Positions 12,535 through 18,500 of a stretch of 64,000 bases of DNA are shown piece by piece. This DNA is from Zygnema circumcarinatum SAG 698-1b (lineage: Eukaryota > Plantae > Zygnematophyceae), in contig CM074813.1 of NCBI GenBank assembly GCA_037447605.1, positions 434,001-498,000 of the forward strand. The letters run 5' to 3'. Both the position numbers and the translations under genes were made by a program. Position 1 is the stretch's first letter. Each line of letters opens with the position of its first letter. Below the pieces are notes generated by a model that had not been told where the DNA came from, searched no databases, and was given only the letters and a program-made list of their open reading frames with translations.

Positions 12535-15500
12535 ATGGCGGGCGAGCAAACGTTCGCGTTCGGCTCTCTCGTGCTCGCTAAAGTGCGAGGCTTCCCGCCA
12601 TGGCCGGCCGAGGTAGGGAGTGATAGAGAGGGAGAGGGAGGGAGAGAGAGAGGGGGAGAGAGAGTGGGAGAGAGAGGGGAGAGAGGGAGGGGAGGAGAGG
12701 GGGGAAGAGGGGGAGCGGGAGAGGGAGGAGGGAGGGAGAGAGGAGAGGAAAGAGGAAGAGAGAGAGAGAGAGAGAGAGAGAGAGAGAGAGAGAGAGAGAG
12801 AGAGAGAGAGAGAGAGAGAGAGAGAGAGAGAGAGAGAGAGAGAGAGAGAGAGAGAGAGAGAGAGAGAGAGAGAGAGAGAGAGAGAGAGAGAGAGAGAGAG
12901 AGAGAGAGAGAGAGAGAGAGAGAGAGAGAGAGAGAGAGAGAGAGAGAGAGAGAGAGAGAGAGAGAGAGAGAGAGAGAGAGAGAGAGAGAGAGAGAGAGAG
13001 AGAGAGAGAGAGAGAGAGAGAGAGAGAGAGAGAGAGAGAGAGAGAGAGAGAGAGAGAGAGAGAGAGAGAGAGAGAGAGAGAGAGAGAGAGAGAGAGAGAG
13101 AGAGAGAGAGAGAGAGAGAGAGAGAGAGAGAGAGAGAGAGAGAGAGAGAGAGAGAGAGAGAGAGAGAGAGAGAGAGAGAGAGAGAGAGAGAGAGAGAGAG
13201 AGAGAGAGAGAGAGAGAGAGAGAGAGAGAGAGAGAGAGAGAGAGAGAGAGAGAGAGAGAGAGAGAGAGAGAGAGAGAGAGAGAGAGAGAGAGAGAGAGAG
13301 AGAGAGAGAGAGAGAGAGAGAGAGAGAGAGAGAGAGAGAGAGAGAGAGAGAGAGAGAGAGAGAGAGAGAGAGAGAGAGAGAGAGAGAGAGAGAGAGAGAG
13401 AGAGAGAGAGAGAGAGAGAGAGAGAGAGAGAGAGAGAGAGAGAGAGAGAGAGAGAGAGAGAGAGAGAGAGAGAGAGAGAGAGAGAGAGAGAGAGAGAGAG
13501 AGAGAGAGAGAGAGAGAGAGAGAGAGAGAGAGAGAGAGAGAGAGAGAGAGAGAGAGAGAGAGAGAGAGAGAGAGAGAGAGAGAGAGAGAGAGAGAGAGAG
13601 AGAGAGAGAGAGAGAGAGAGAGAGAGAGAGAGAGAGAGAGAGAGAGAGAGAGAGAGAGAGAGAGAGAGAGAGAGAGAGAGAGAGAGAGAGAGAGAGAGAG
13701 AGAGAGAGAGAGAGAGAGAGAGAGAGAGAGAGAGAGAGAGAGAGAGAGAGAGAGAGAGAGAGAGAGAGAGAGAGAGAGAGAGAGAGAGAGAGAGAGAGAG
13801 AGAGAGAGAGAGAGAGAGAGAGAGAGAGAGAGAGAGAGAGAGAGAGAGAGAGAGAGAGAGAGAGAGAGAGAGAGAGAGAGAGAGAGAGAGAGAGAGAGAG
13901 AGAGAGAGAGAGAGAGAGAGAGAGAGAGAGAGAGAGAGAGAGAGAGAGAGAGAGAGAGAGAGAGAGAGAGAGAGAGAGAGAGAGAGAGAGAGAGAGAGAG
14001 AGAGAGAGAGAGAGAGAGAGAGAGAGAGAGAGAGAGAGAGAGAGAGAGAGAGAGAGAGAGAGAGAGAGAGAGAGAGAGAGAGAGAGAGAGAGAGAGAGAG
14101 AGAGAGAGAGAGAGAGAGAGAGAGAGAGAGAGAGAGAGAGAGAGAGAGAGAGAGAGAGAGAGAGAGAGAGAGAGAGAGAGAGAGAGAGAGAGAGAGAGAG
14201 AGAGAGAGAGAGAGAGAGAGAGAGAGAGAGAGAGAGAGAGAGAGAGAGAGAGAGAGAGAGAGAGAGAGAGAGAGAGAGAGAGAGAGAGAGAGAGAGAGAG
14301 AGAGAGAGAGAGAGAGAGAGAGAGAGAGAGAGAGAGAGAGAGAGAGAGAGAGAGAGAGAGAGAGAGAGAGAGAGAGAGAGAGAGAGAGAGAGAGAGAGAG
14401 AGAGAGAGAGAGAGAGAGAGAGAGAGAGAGAGAGAGAGAGAGAGAGAGAGAGAGAGAGAGAGAGAGAGAGAGAGAGAGAGAGAGAGAGAGAGAGAGAGAG
14501 AGAGAGAGAGAGAGAGAGAGAGAGAGAGAGAGAAAGAGAAAATAGTGAACCTAAATCAGTTGCGAGCTGATAAAATGTTTATTCCTGCAGGTGTGCGACC
14601 CCTCCAAGTTCGAGCTAGAGCCAAAGGAGGGCCAAATTCTTGTTCTGTTTTTCCAACCGAAACAAATGTGCGCACCGCCACACTCGTTCACAAATTACCC
14701 TTTTTTTCTTTAGTTGAATTTTATTTTTTGGAGTGTGGATGTACTTTCTTCTTTGTTTTTTGGTTTTTGGATTAAATTGCGCCTGAATGCCGCACTCTGG
14801 TTGGCGGAAGCAGACGGTTTTGCGCTCCGGAAGACGTTACAGCTTTTGCGGGCCGGGCTCGTGCAAGCGCAATTGAGCGCACCAAGGGGCGGAGCTGCCT
14901 GGCGGACTTCAAGGCGGCCATGGAGCTCATACTGGAGGAGGAGAGGAGGGAGAGGGAGGGGGAGAGAGACGCCGAGCGGGAGGCAATCAGGTGATTTTTT
15001 GCCTACTTGTTCCCCAATTTCACCCATTACATCCAAATTTCATCCCAATTTTACCCCAATCATACCCCAATTACACTCAGGACCCTACTACTCTTAGTTC
15101 CATGCGTCTCTGACAGTAAAGATTTTTACGTTATATGACGTCTGGCTCGAAAAGCCTTAAAACCCAAGCTCAGTGCTTAAGCTCCCTTATCAACTTCAAT
15201 GCTATGCTTCTCAGAGAACCAACTAACTGCTAACAGCTAACTGTTGATTAACTAACTAAAGTGCGGCTGCTACCTGCAAACCGCTGTCTTGTAACTCAAT
15301 TGTCGTCGATCCCGTCCTTTTATTGTCATTCTTCTTGAGTGGATGGTGTTTCTTTTTGAAGCAGTCATTCGGCGGAAACGGAAGAAGCGCCAGACGACGA
15401 AAAAGTTGAAAGCAGAGAAGATGCAGAAAGCAGAGGACGAGGGTCTGAGAATGCAAGGGAAGGGAGCAAAGGAGGGGAACAACGAGAGGGAGAAGACGAA

Positions 15501-18500
15501 ACAGTTCGGCGGGAAGAAGAGGAAGCGGAAGGAGTTGAAATAGATGAAGATAAAGGAGAAGAGGGGGAGGAGGAGGAGAGGGAGAGGAAGAAGGTGAGAG
15601 GGAGAGGGAGAGGGAGGAATGAGAATGAGGAGGAAGAGGGGGAAAAGGAGGAGGGGAGGACGAAGGTGAGAGGGAGCGGGAGAGGGAGAGGGGGAGGGAG
15701 GAAGGAGGACGCGAAGGACGAAGAGAAGGAAAAGGAGGAAAAGGAGGAGGAGGACGAGGAGGAGGAGGAAGAGGAGGAGGAGGAAGAGGAAGAGGAGGAC
15801 AAGGAGGAGGAGGAGGAGGAGGAGGAGGAAGAAGATGATGATGATGATGAAGAGTACCGCCATGGAGCCGTGAAGAGGATGCCACAGAAGCGAGTACATA
15901 GTGCTCCCAAGGCTACTGCGCAGGTCTCATGGATGGCAGTGGGCTGAAACTCGCTCTCTAACTTGCTTGGATGCTTTTTTGGTCTTTGAAATGTCTGGAT
16001 TGTTTGGTTGAAGTTTCCACATGTGTTGAGAATGCTGGGCGAACGCTTGTTTGAGGGATAGAGGGAGTGGGACGGACGGAGAGGAAGAGAGGGGGAGAGA
16101 GAGAGGGGGGGGGAAGGGAGGAGGAAGGGGGGAGGAGAGAGGGAGGTGGGGAGTGGGGGTGGGGGAGTACTTCTGGGGTACTTCCAGTATCGAGCTCATT
16201 CACTACATTCCCCAAGTTGACGGGTGTTTGATGGCTAAAGAATACTTGGAGGTCTGCCAGTCACGTAGCCTCTCATGTCCTCCTACGGCGCTATCACTGA
16301 CGAATTTTGCTTCTGAATATCAAGATCCACCTCCTCAATTGACTTAAACCTAGGTCTAGGCCCCGTTACAGTTGACTTGTGATGGCTTGAATAGACCCAA
16401 GATGCCGTCAATTGAGGTGTGAATATGTTGACTGAAATGATTTTTTTTTTTTTTTGTAGTCGACTTGAACTGACTTGACTTAACCCTGTCTTGGTTGCCT
16501 TGCAGAAGAGGGCGAGACAAGCTCCGGGAGGGAGGCCGAGAGGCGAACATTCTCCGAAGCCAACGAATGTGACGAGACGAAGGCGAGAAAAGAAGGCTTC
16601 CCTGGAAGTCGAAGGAAGCTTATTGGGTATGGAAGGTTTTTAGGACTAAAAAAATCTGTAGCTTAACCATTTCAATTATTGTCCCAGTTTCTTCTCCTTT
16701 TTGTTTGCGCATGTTTTGCTACTCGCTGCACCAGTTTGCGAGTCAGACGTATTCCTTTCTTGTTCATTTTTTTGAGGAAATTTCTTTGGATCTGGCAGCA
16801 TTTGTGAAGAAAAAGGGAAGTACGGTGGAGATGGCAGCGGCAGCGTGGGTAGAAAAGTACACAGAGGAGCCCAACAAAGCCATCGCAGATCTCCTGAATT
16901 TCCTTTTTCAGGTGAGGGAAAAAAGGGGGCCAAGAGTATGATGCACTCTTATTGTTTCGGAGCAGAACATTGATAATTGTCTGCAGCGCTTTTCGGCTTC
17001 GATGGCATTCGGATTTTGTCGTCATCACTGTTGCCAACCTTTTTTTGTCGTTGTTATGATGATGATGATGATGCTCATCGACATCATGTGATGTGCAGGC
17101 ATGCGGCTCTCACATCACCGTGGAACCCGAGGACGCATCAGAGGAAGGTGATGTCGACGACGTCGTTCAGAACTTGGTGGCAGCAGCGAAAGATGTATCC
17201 TCGACAACATGTAATGATGCAGCCATGGGTTCATTTGGATCCTTTCCATTCTTGCTGAGTCTTTTTCACATTATTATGTTGAAGAAGATTCCCATTATTT
17301 ACAGCATACAACTTGCGCGTGTCAGCATCGTCATGCAAATTGTTCTGAGGTCCTTTGCTATTCTAATTTAAGATTTCTACAATTTTCCAGTTTTAGCATT
17401 TGTAAAGTCATTTCCAACACTCGTCTCCACTCGTCTCGTCGTCTTCCCCGTCGTCATTTTATTTCCCCCCCTCGTTTAAGGAGCCCTTAATCTTAACCAA
17501 CACAGGGAGATGTTGCCGACACGGTGGGGTCCAAAAGCAAAGAGACGAAAGATCTCAAGAAAAACATGTTGCAGTTTTGGCACGCCCTTGTGCTGGAGTG
17601 CAGGGAGACGATCCTCTTCGATGAAAAGCTTTTTAACAAAGCGATGAGTTATGTGATTGCATTGGCATGGCAAGTACTCCTCCACAAACCTTTTTGGATA
17701 GTTTTGCCTGAAATGTGTGCTGTGTGATTCTAATCTTACTTCTTGGACCCAATACACAACTGAATCTGCTTCTGCAGATCAATTTGTATATTTCTGTATT
17801 GGTCTTGCCTAGCTGACTGAGATGTTCCCCTTCTGTTGAAATCTCCTGCAGCACTTCTCCTCGAACTTTCCGCCAGGTGGCGACTTCGGTAGCTCTCCAA
17901 CTTGTCTCGTCGCTCGTAACGGTCGCCACTTCCTTCATAGAAACACGGGAAACAGTTCAACGGCAACTGAACGCTGAGACAAAGAAACGCAGCGTCGGCG
18001 AGAGGGTGACGGCTCTCACGCGGAGCCTCGAGGACATAAACGAAAAAATTGCAACAGTGGAAGGAATGATGCGGAATTTGTTCACCGGGTGAGGATGAGG
18101 GACGGAGGGAGGGAGGGAGGNNNNNNNNNNAGGGAGGGAGGGAGGGAGGGAGGGAGGGCGGTAGGGAGGGAGGGACGGAGGGAGGGATGGAGGGAGGGAG
18201 GAGGGAGGGAGTTTCACGTGAGGAACTTTGTTAAACCGGTTTCGGATTTTCGGTTTTTTAATGACTTTGGAATTAGGGTTGCATCCCACTTTCTTGAGGA
18301 CTCATGTTTTCGCTGCAACGTGACGTGACAACAGGTGGGTCTTTGTTTTTTTGTCTTTTTGCAAATTTTTTAATTTGACCTTCTTTTATATTTTTATTCG
18401 TGTTCTTGCAGAGTTTTCATGCATCGCTATCGAGATGTGGATTCAGAAATTCGAGTATCGTGCATTTCCTCTCTCGGATCGTGGATTGAGAATTACCCAT

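Follow-up and report, generated by a model that had tools for sequence, protein, structure and literature searches.

Adaptor proteins recruit cohesin through orthologues of its SCC3 subunit, as illustrated by Swi6/HP1 and Psc3 in fission yeast and by CTCF and STAG in vertebrates. The plant lineage lacks CTCF, and how cohesin is positioned there is an open question. Within plants, the PDS5 proteins carry a Tudor domain that reads H3K4me1, as stated in a passage of PMC13739617 citing Niu et al. 2021, and this reader is described as required for chromatin binding and dispensable for domain folding (PMC13739617). A 2012 survey of plant and animal PWWP architectures left cohesin unmentioned and reported HUA2-type PWWP genes from land plants only (PMC3457860). 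Here, we describe a locus in the streptophyte alga Zygnema circumcarinatum SAG 698-1b, located within a stretch of 64,000 nucleotides (assembly GCA_037447605.1, contig CM074813.1, positions 434,001 to 498,000, hereafter the window, with coordinates counted from its first base), at which a single plus-strand gene (12535-25943) very probably encodes, across 24 exons, a PWWP-SCC3 fusion protein of approximately 1,574 amino acids. Full-text literature searches on PWWP together with SCC3, cohesin/STAG or Zygnematophyceae yielded no account of this architecture, in agreement with a first-pass annotation made from the letters of the window, which knew of no PWWP-SCC3 protein. The fusion is therefore new to the literature searched, though already in databases, where it is contained in a public gene model from Mesotaenium endlicherianum.

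The first-pass annotation had proposed the fusion from exon phases, and we consider it supported as real and as conserved in two relatives with the same layout, because its exon junctions were present in RNA, no conserved alternative start for SCC3 was found and two independent sequences carry the same domain order. To place the junctions, we used RNA contigs from four public runs bearing the same species label (X1, X2, X3 and X6, from three studies), which were positioned on 14550-20400 with the low-complexity middle of exon 4 (15552-15861) masked. Every predicted intron in this interval was skipped at GT..AG sites, apart from one skipped at GC..AG, the intron after exon 8 (donor 17669/17670), which was seen in all four runs. 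The joints 14667^14814 and 15923^16506, both GT..AG, were also found in every run, whilst a loose end at 14589 carried the last bases of exon 1 (4/4 runs), showing that intron 1, together with its microsatellite, is spliced out. Exons 1-3 have AG/GT borders throughout and, when joined, tile one PWWP domain. The reading frame of the spliced model is uninterrupted from 12535 to 25943. RNA joints define this model up to 20265 and the relative P0055, introduced below, guided it from there to the 3' end, with the exon 20 acceptor and the exon 23/24 junction being the least certain choices (alternatives shift the length by at most 25 amino acids). The short GT-AG introns are those of nuclear DNA from a green-lineage eukaryote.

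Exon 4 (559 nucleotides), which links the PWWP and SCC3 parts, had been described as open and phase-compatible on both sides, and this held: the exon is entered in phase 2 from exon 3, is open for 186 codons solely in the frame that exon 3 passes on, and has a GT donor that hands over in phase 0. Its predicted phase-0 joining to 16506 is the GT..AG joint recovered from all four runs. Exon 5 begins in phase 0 without a start of its own and the in-frame TGA reported just upstream of it was located at 16476; no rival joint into 16506 occurred among the contigs of the four runs, making 15923 the sole entry, and the claim that SCC3 needs an upstream exon was thus borne out. From the SCC3 side, a contig of 3,485 nucleotides in X1 extended past the junction at 16506 and covered at least the final 84 nucleotides of exon 4. 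From the PWWP side, positions 760-949 of contig 17 in X6 (1,095 nucleotides) corresponded to 15362-15551, its depth of 27 equalled that of the contig bearing the 14667^14814 joint, and its geometry fits a leader followed by exons 1-3 and the first ~330 nucleotides of exon 4. A second index search found 83-93% of sampled words from 15540-15875 in RNA-type runs of P2 and P3, two studies to which spliced-contig runs also belong (83% in X6, itself such a run), so that the whole of exon 4 is present in contigs of those RNA runs.

Two candidate arrangements that would separate the PWWP from SCC3 were rejected. The first was a stand-alone PWWP protein produced by read-through to the TGA at 15945-15947; depth across 15922-16117 was zero in three of the four runs, with low read-through in X2 only, a run that keeps other introns and hence probably contains pre-mRNA. 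The second was a first exon for SCC3 at 16402-16416, from which no joint 16416^16506 was seen in any of the four runs. Minus-strand open reading frames (ORFs) across exon 4 were also discarded as low-complexity mirror frames rather than genes.

A 78-amino-acid STAG exon was searched against 1.84 billion representative proteins. The closest long match was P0002 (908 amino acids), which has about 100 more residues before the STAG exon than unfused SCC3 proteins such as that of Chlorokybus (P0019). This protein is the Mesotaenium gene model ME000128S00174, encoding a PWWP domain (54.1 bits) along with STAG, the stromalin conservative domain (SCD) and SCC3 HEAT repeats. When P0002 was then searched against a collection of 5.8 billion proteins, the PWWP family PF00855 was present in two of the best 120 SCC3 homologues with precomputed Pfam domains, P0002 itself and P0055 (1,409 amino acids). 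The latter is encoded on L001, a Logan contig of 4,628 nucleotides from run SRR8128907, by an unbroken ORF at 35-4264 that has in-frame stops before its ATG. As the window gene has 23 introns and L001 is without introns, L001 represents a spliced transcript. Its one ORF holds, in order, PWWP (59.4 bits), an acidic linker, STAG, SCD and HEAT_SCC3-SA, and the window protein follows it collinearly, starting at the first codon and reaching the C-terminal tail. At its 3' end, exon 4 encodes EEY and then a basic patch, which aligned with the corresponding stretch of both P0055 and P0002, tying the linker exon to both of its flanks.

Beyond these sequences, a PWWP domain was absent from the SCC3 homologues listed for liverworts, mosses, lycophytes, ferns, seed plants and Chlorokybus, and PF00855 was found in none of the ESM Atlas SCC3 clusters. 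The translation of exon 4 (region 1-75), used as a protein query, gave no match in a collection that contains no short RNA-contig proteins of this organism. The SCC3 model of Spirogloea has a truncated N-terminus and is uninformative on PWWP. Two genomic Logan contigs (L002 and L003) carried close SCC3 exons with land-plant-like N-terminal exons, including an own Met in L002; neither had a PWWP match, but they cover just 1-2 kb upstream and are uninformative for algae.

Several observations weigh against the fusion reading. The SCC3 gene model of Closterium sp. NIES-68 is without PWWP, indicating that the fusion is not universal in close algae. In Zygnema, no one contig crosses 15552-15861, where contigs break, and we infer rather than observe the continuity of PWWP and SCC3 on one molecule in this organism. 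Of the transcript from PWWP into SCC3 that the first-pass annotation had suggested looking for, the junctions and both flanks of exon 4 were thus recovered, whilst a contig across the middle of the exon was not. Depth of the PWWP-side contigs was 0.3-0.45x that of the SCC3 contigs in X1, X3 and X6, compared with 25.7 versus 27.4 (~0.9x) in X2; this deficit could reflect 5' under-coverage or an extra internal start. Contigs in which intron 3 or intron 4 was retained also occurred, at low depth.

The retention of intron 3 could yield an added, regulated isoform, a PWWP-only protein of 111 amino acids that could compete with PWWP-SCC3, given a TGA directly after the exon 3 donor and unspliced contigs across 14973-15391 at ~13% (X2), 35% (X6) and 61-67% (X3) of spliced depth. 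We consider this isoform unlikely, as the same runs retain other introns (16123-16531 and 18220-18420) in a manner resembling ordinary pre-mRNA, the contigs showed neither a poly(A) end nor a contig terminus within intron 3, and the mRNA would be a target of nonsense-mediated decay. Alternatively, the locus could comprise two overlapping units, with the main SCC3 mRNA starting inside exon 4 and being translated from the ATG at 15879, the sole in-frame ATG of the exon, and an upstream PWWP unit that is occasionally conjoined to it. Such an arrangement would account for the PWWP-side depth of about one-third to one-half in three runs and for the contig breaks within exon 4. The upstream unit, however, lacks its own stop and terminal exon, its ORF being open into exon 4, and the coverage beyond the 15923 donor was, as described above, zero in all runs but X2, the run in which the depths of the two sides were equal. 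Within the exon 4 sequence covered by the SCC3 contig, six out-of-frame ATGs (15835-15862) come before 15879, and the Met at 15879 is not conserved, P0055 having no Met between its PWWP and the conserved SCC3 core. Together with the single ORF of the P0055 transcript, these points make two overlapping units quite improbable. An artefact of chimeric contig assembly or of merging adjacent genes in the models, affecting both the window and its relatives, is hardly credible: assembly from short reads can link adjacent transcripts, and for Mesotaenium the sequence comes from a computed gene model, but three independent sequences agree in the order of their parts, in having one open frame and in homologous ends of the linker, the junction is canonical, in phase and present in four runs, the PWWP is as conserved as the SCC3 core, and SCC3 exon 5 lacks its own start and has a TGA upstream.

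For the fusion protein, Pfam scans of the spliced window sequence were carried out exon by exon and full-length comparisons were local. Exon 1 alone scored just below the PF00855 cut-off (23.6 bits on 26 amino acids; cut-off 25.6), whilst the spliced PWWP (100 amino acids) shared 67% identity with that of P0055 (E = 9e-52) and 51% with that of Mesotaenium. The nearest solved sequences were the PWWP domains of LEDGF/PSIP1, HDGF, HRP-2 and HRP-3 (E = 3e-7 to 5e-6), and the Mesotaenium PWWP had one named match only, a HUA2 protein at 43% identity. The assignment of the first three exons to a HUA2-like PWWP domain therefore stands, with LEDGF/HDGF as the closest structures, and the likeness to HUA2 is confined, at the level of sequence, to the PWWP. 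Window residues V17, F20, W23 and F46 aligned with M15, Y18, W21 and F44 of LEDGF, which we take to be its methyl-lysine cage residues, and the positions of F20, W23 and F46 were retained in all three fused proteins. An AlphaFold2 (AF2) model, made for residues 1-110 of the orthologue P0055 rather than for the window protein, from an alignment that included the window exons, consisted of five strands then two helices (mean predicted local distance difference test score 82.4). Its top Foldseek matches in the PDB were all PWWP domains (probability 1.00), including DNMT3B and the H3K36me3 readers BRPF1 and HRP-2. Between the window and L001, nonsynonymous divergence (dN) of the PWWP was 0.24, with synonymous divergence saturated, compared to 0.14-0.30 for the SCC3 parts and 0.62-0.73 for the linker and C-terminal tail. 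As the PWWP value lies inside the SCC3 range, the reader domain is held by purifying selection as tightly as the cohesin part.

The remainder of the protein is a recognizable SCC3. Exons 8 and 9 scored 35.4 and 43.9 bits to PF08514 (STAG; cut-off 25), exon 10 scored 70.4 bits to PF21581 (SCD), with exon 11 marginal (27.4; cut-off 27.5), and three exons scored 32-50 bits to PF24571 (SCC3/SA HEAT-repeat). The SCC3 part was collinear with P0055 over 1,163 amino acids at 60% identity, and with P0002 at 51%. In the SCC3 tree, the window gene was placed inside the streptophyte SCC3 clade as sister to P0055 with 100% support, with the branching among this pair, Mesotaenium, Spirogloea, Closterium and land plants being mutually unresolved. 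An AT-hook (RRGRPRKR) opens the last exon of the window gene and a weaker GRP patch lies in exon 5; P0055 retains the C-terminal AT-hook (RRGRPRK) and has a further KRGRPTRK patch in its linker.

From this layout, a mechanism of histone-guided cohesin placement can be proposed. In the modelled protein, amino acids 1 to ~97 form the HDGF/LEDGF/HUA2-type PWWP, followed by a ~190-amino-acid acidic, RG-containing disordered linker and by a basic AT-hook-like patch that leads into the ordinary SCC3 N-terminus. With its aromatic cage retained, the PWWP is likely to bind nucleosomes carrying methyl-lysine, with H3K36me2/3 plus DNA as the most likely target. It could thereby tether cohesin to transcribed chromatin, or bias its loading or retention towards such chromatin, with no adaptor involved, and the flexible linker would give the reader access to nucleosomes whilst the HEAT body remained on the kleisin. 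Exon 4 resembles a former first exon of SCC3 that is now entered via an acceptor from captured PWWP exons, because canonical plant SCC3 also starts with an acidic stretch then a basic patch. A bolder and rather doubtful extension is that these algae have no SCC3 other than PWWP-SCC3, in which case all of their cohesin would be coupled directly to a histone mark and the fusion would serve as a 'Rosetta stone' for land plants. If this were true, a land-plant HUA2/HDGF-type PWWP protein would bind SCC3 non-covalently and place cohesin on transcribed chromatin without CTCF. The features of the gene are collated in Table 1.

Table 1. Features of the PWWP-SCC3 gene and its upstream region, in window coordinates, with the basis for each.
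Feature	Position	Strand	Basis
Five AGGGTTT (telobox-like) motifs, promoter or 5' leader	12324-12502	+	Motif count
Exon 1: ATG start, first PWWP strands, GFPPWPAE motif, cage residues F20 and W23	12535-12612	+	Frame, PF00855 score, RNA loose end
Intron 1, with perfect (GA)888 microsatellite at 12758-14533	12613-14590	+	Spliced out in RNA contigs
Exon 2: mid PWWP barrel, third cage residue F46	14591-14667	+	Frame; joint 14667^14814 in 4 runs
Exon 3: end of PWWP barrel and C-terminal helices	14814-14990	+	Frame, alignment
Exon 4: acidic linker of 186 codons, RG/RGG patches	15365-15923	+	Open frame, RNA contigs
Exon 5: basic, AT-hook-like (GRP) and nuclear localization signal-like stretch	16506-16626	+	Joint 15923^16506 in 4 runs/3 studies
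Exons 6, 7: start of conserved SCC3 N-terminal region	16799-16911, 17099-17194	+	RNA joints; 66-76% identity to P0055
Exons 8, 9: STAG domain	17506-17669, 17852-18088	+	PF08514 scores; RNA joints
Exons 10, 11: stromalin conservative domain	18412-18556, 18894-19072	+	PF21581 scores; RNA joints
Exons 12-14: HEAT-repeat body	19301-19437, 19561-19691, 20104-20265	+	RNA contig junctions (to 20265)
Exons 15-19: HEAT-repeat body	20397-20558, 20884-21065, 21428-21572, 21892-22098, 22373-22517	+	Modelled on P0055
Exons 20-23: HEAT-repeat body	22774-22883, 23154-23294, 23890-24158, 24354-24478	+	Modelled on P0055
Last exon: AT-hook (RRGRPRKR), acidic disordered tail, stop TAA 25941-25943	25081-25943	+	Alignment with P0055

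Upstream of the coding sequence, five of the 37 AGGGTTT matches in the window fall within the 12324-12502 cluster (11 expected for the whole window), and this cluster could belong to the promoter or leader as an element of this cell-cycle gene. The (GA)888 tract, at 1.8 kb, takes up most of intron 1, with degenerate GA-rich DNA on either side, and could be a genuine giant microsatellite or an assembly expansion. Contigs from the RNA runs stopped with loose ends at an assembly gap (18121-18130) in the intron after exon 9, and further short N runs marking assembly gaps occur at 31030, 41514, 42902, 47741, 50789, 53465, 54503, 59812 and 60253. Elsewhere in the window, a (GAT)n triplet repeat of ~450 bp with few interruptions (10196-10642) yields long poly-D, poly-S, poly-I and poly-M ORFs in various frames on both strands. 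Degenerate TTTAGGG telomere-like clusters lie in opposite orientation at 27782-27987 (+) and 29296-29725 (-), with a 210-amino-acid minus-strand ORF (28623-29255) between them.

An SCC3 with its own PWWP in at least three streptophyte algal sequences provides a natural, testable case of coupling between a histone mark and cohesin, and puts forward a candidate partnership of HDGF/HUA2-type PWWP proteins with SCC3 in land plants and beyond. Compared with canonical SCC3/STAG proteins (Arabidopsis SCC3, human STAG1/2 and yeast Scc3/Psc3), the window protein has the same order of STAG, SCD and HEAT, with 45-56% identity in the body to land-plant SCC3, and it shares with plant SCC3 an N-terminal tail that is first acidic and then basic as well as an AT-hook near the C-terminus, but it carries an extra PWWP and long acidic linker in front. 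HDGF, LEDGF (PSIP1), HRP-2 and plant HUA2 resemble it in PWWP sequence, cage alignment and predicted fold; in those proteins, however, the PWWP is joined to an integrase-binding domain (IBD) or a CID/RPR domain rather than to a cohesin subunit. Within the HUA2/HULK family the PWWP is followed by CID/RPR, as in the HUA2 protein P0054, whereas the fused proteins are without a CID. In function, the closest plant precedent is PDS5, likewise a HEAT-repeat regulator of cohesin with its own histone reader and, to our knowledge, through its Tudor domain the only built-in cohesin reader known in the plant lineage. It nonetheless differs in being PDS5 and not SCC3, and in having a Tudor rather than a PWWP domain, at a C-terminal position and for another mark. 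Lastly, the Swi6/HP1-Psc3 and CTCF-STAG systems are alike in that factors bound to chromatin position cohesin by way of its SCC3 subunit, but whilst each of these needs an adaptor, the predicted reader in the Zygnema gene would be covalently part of SCC3 itself.

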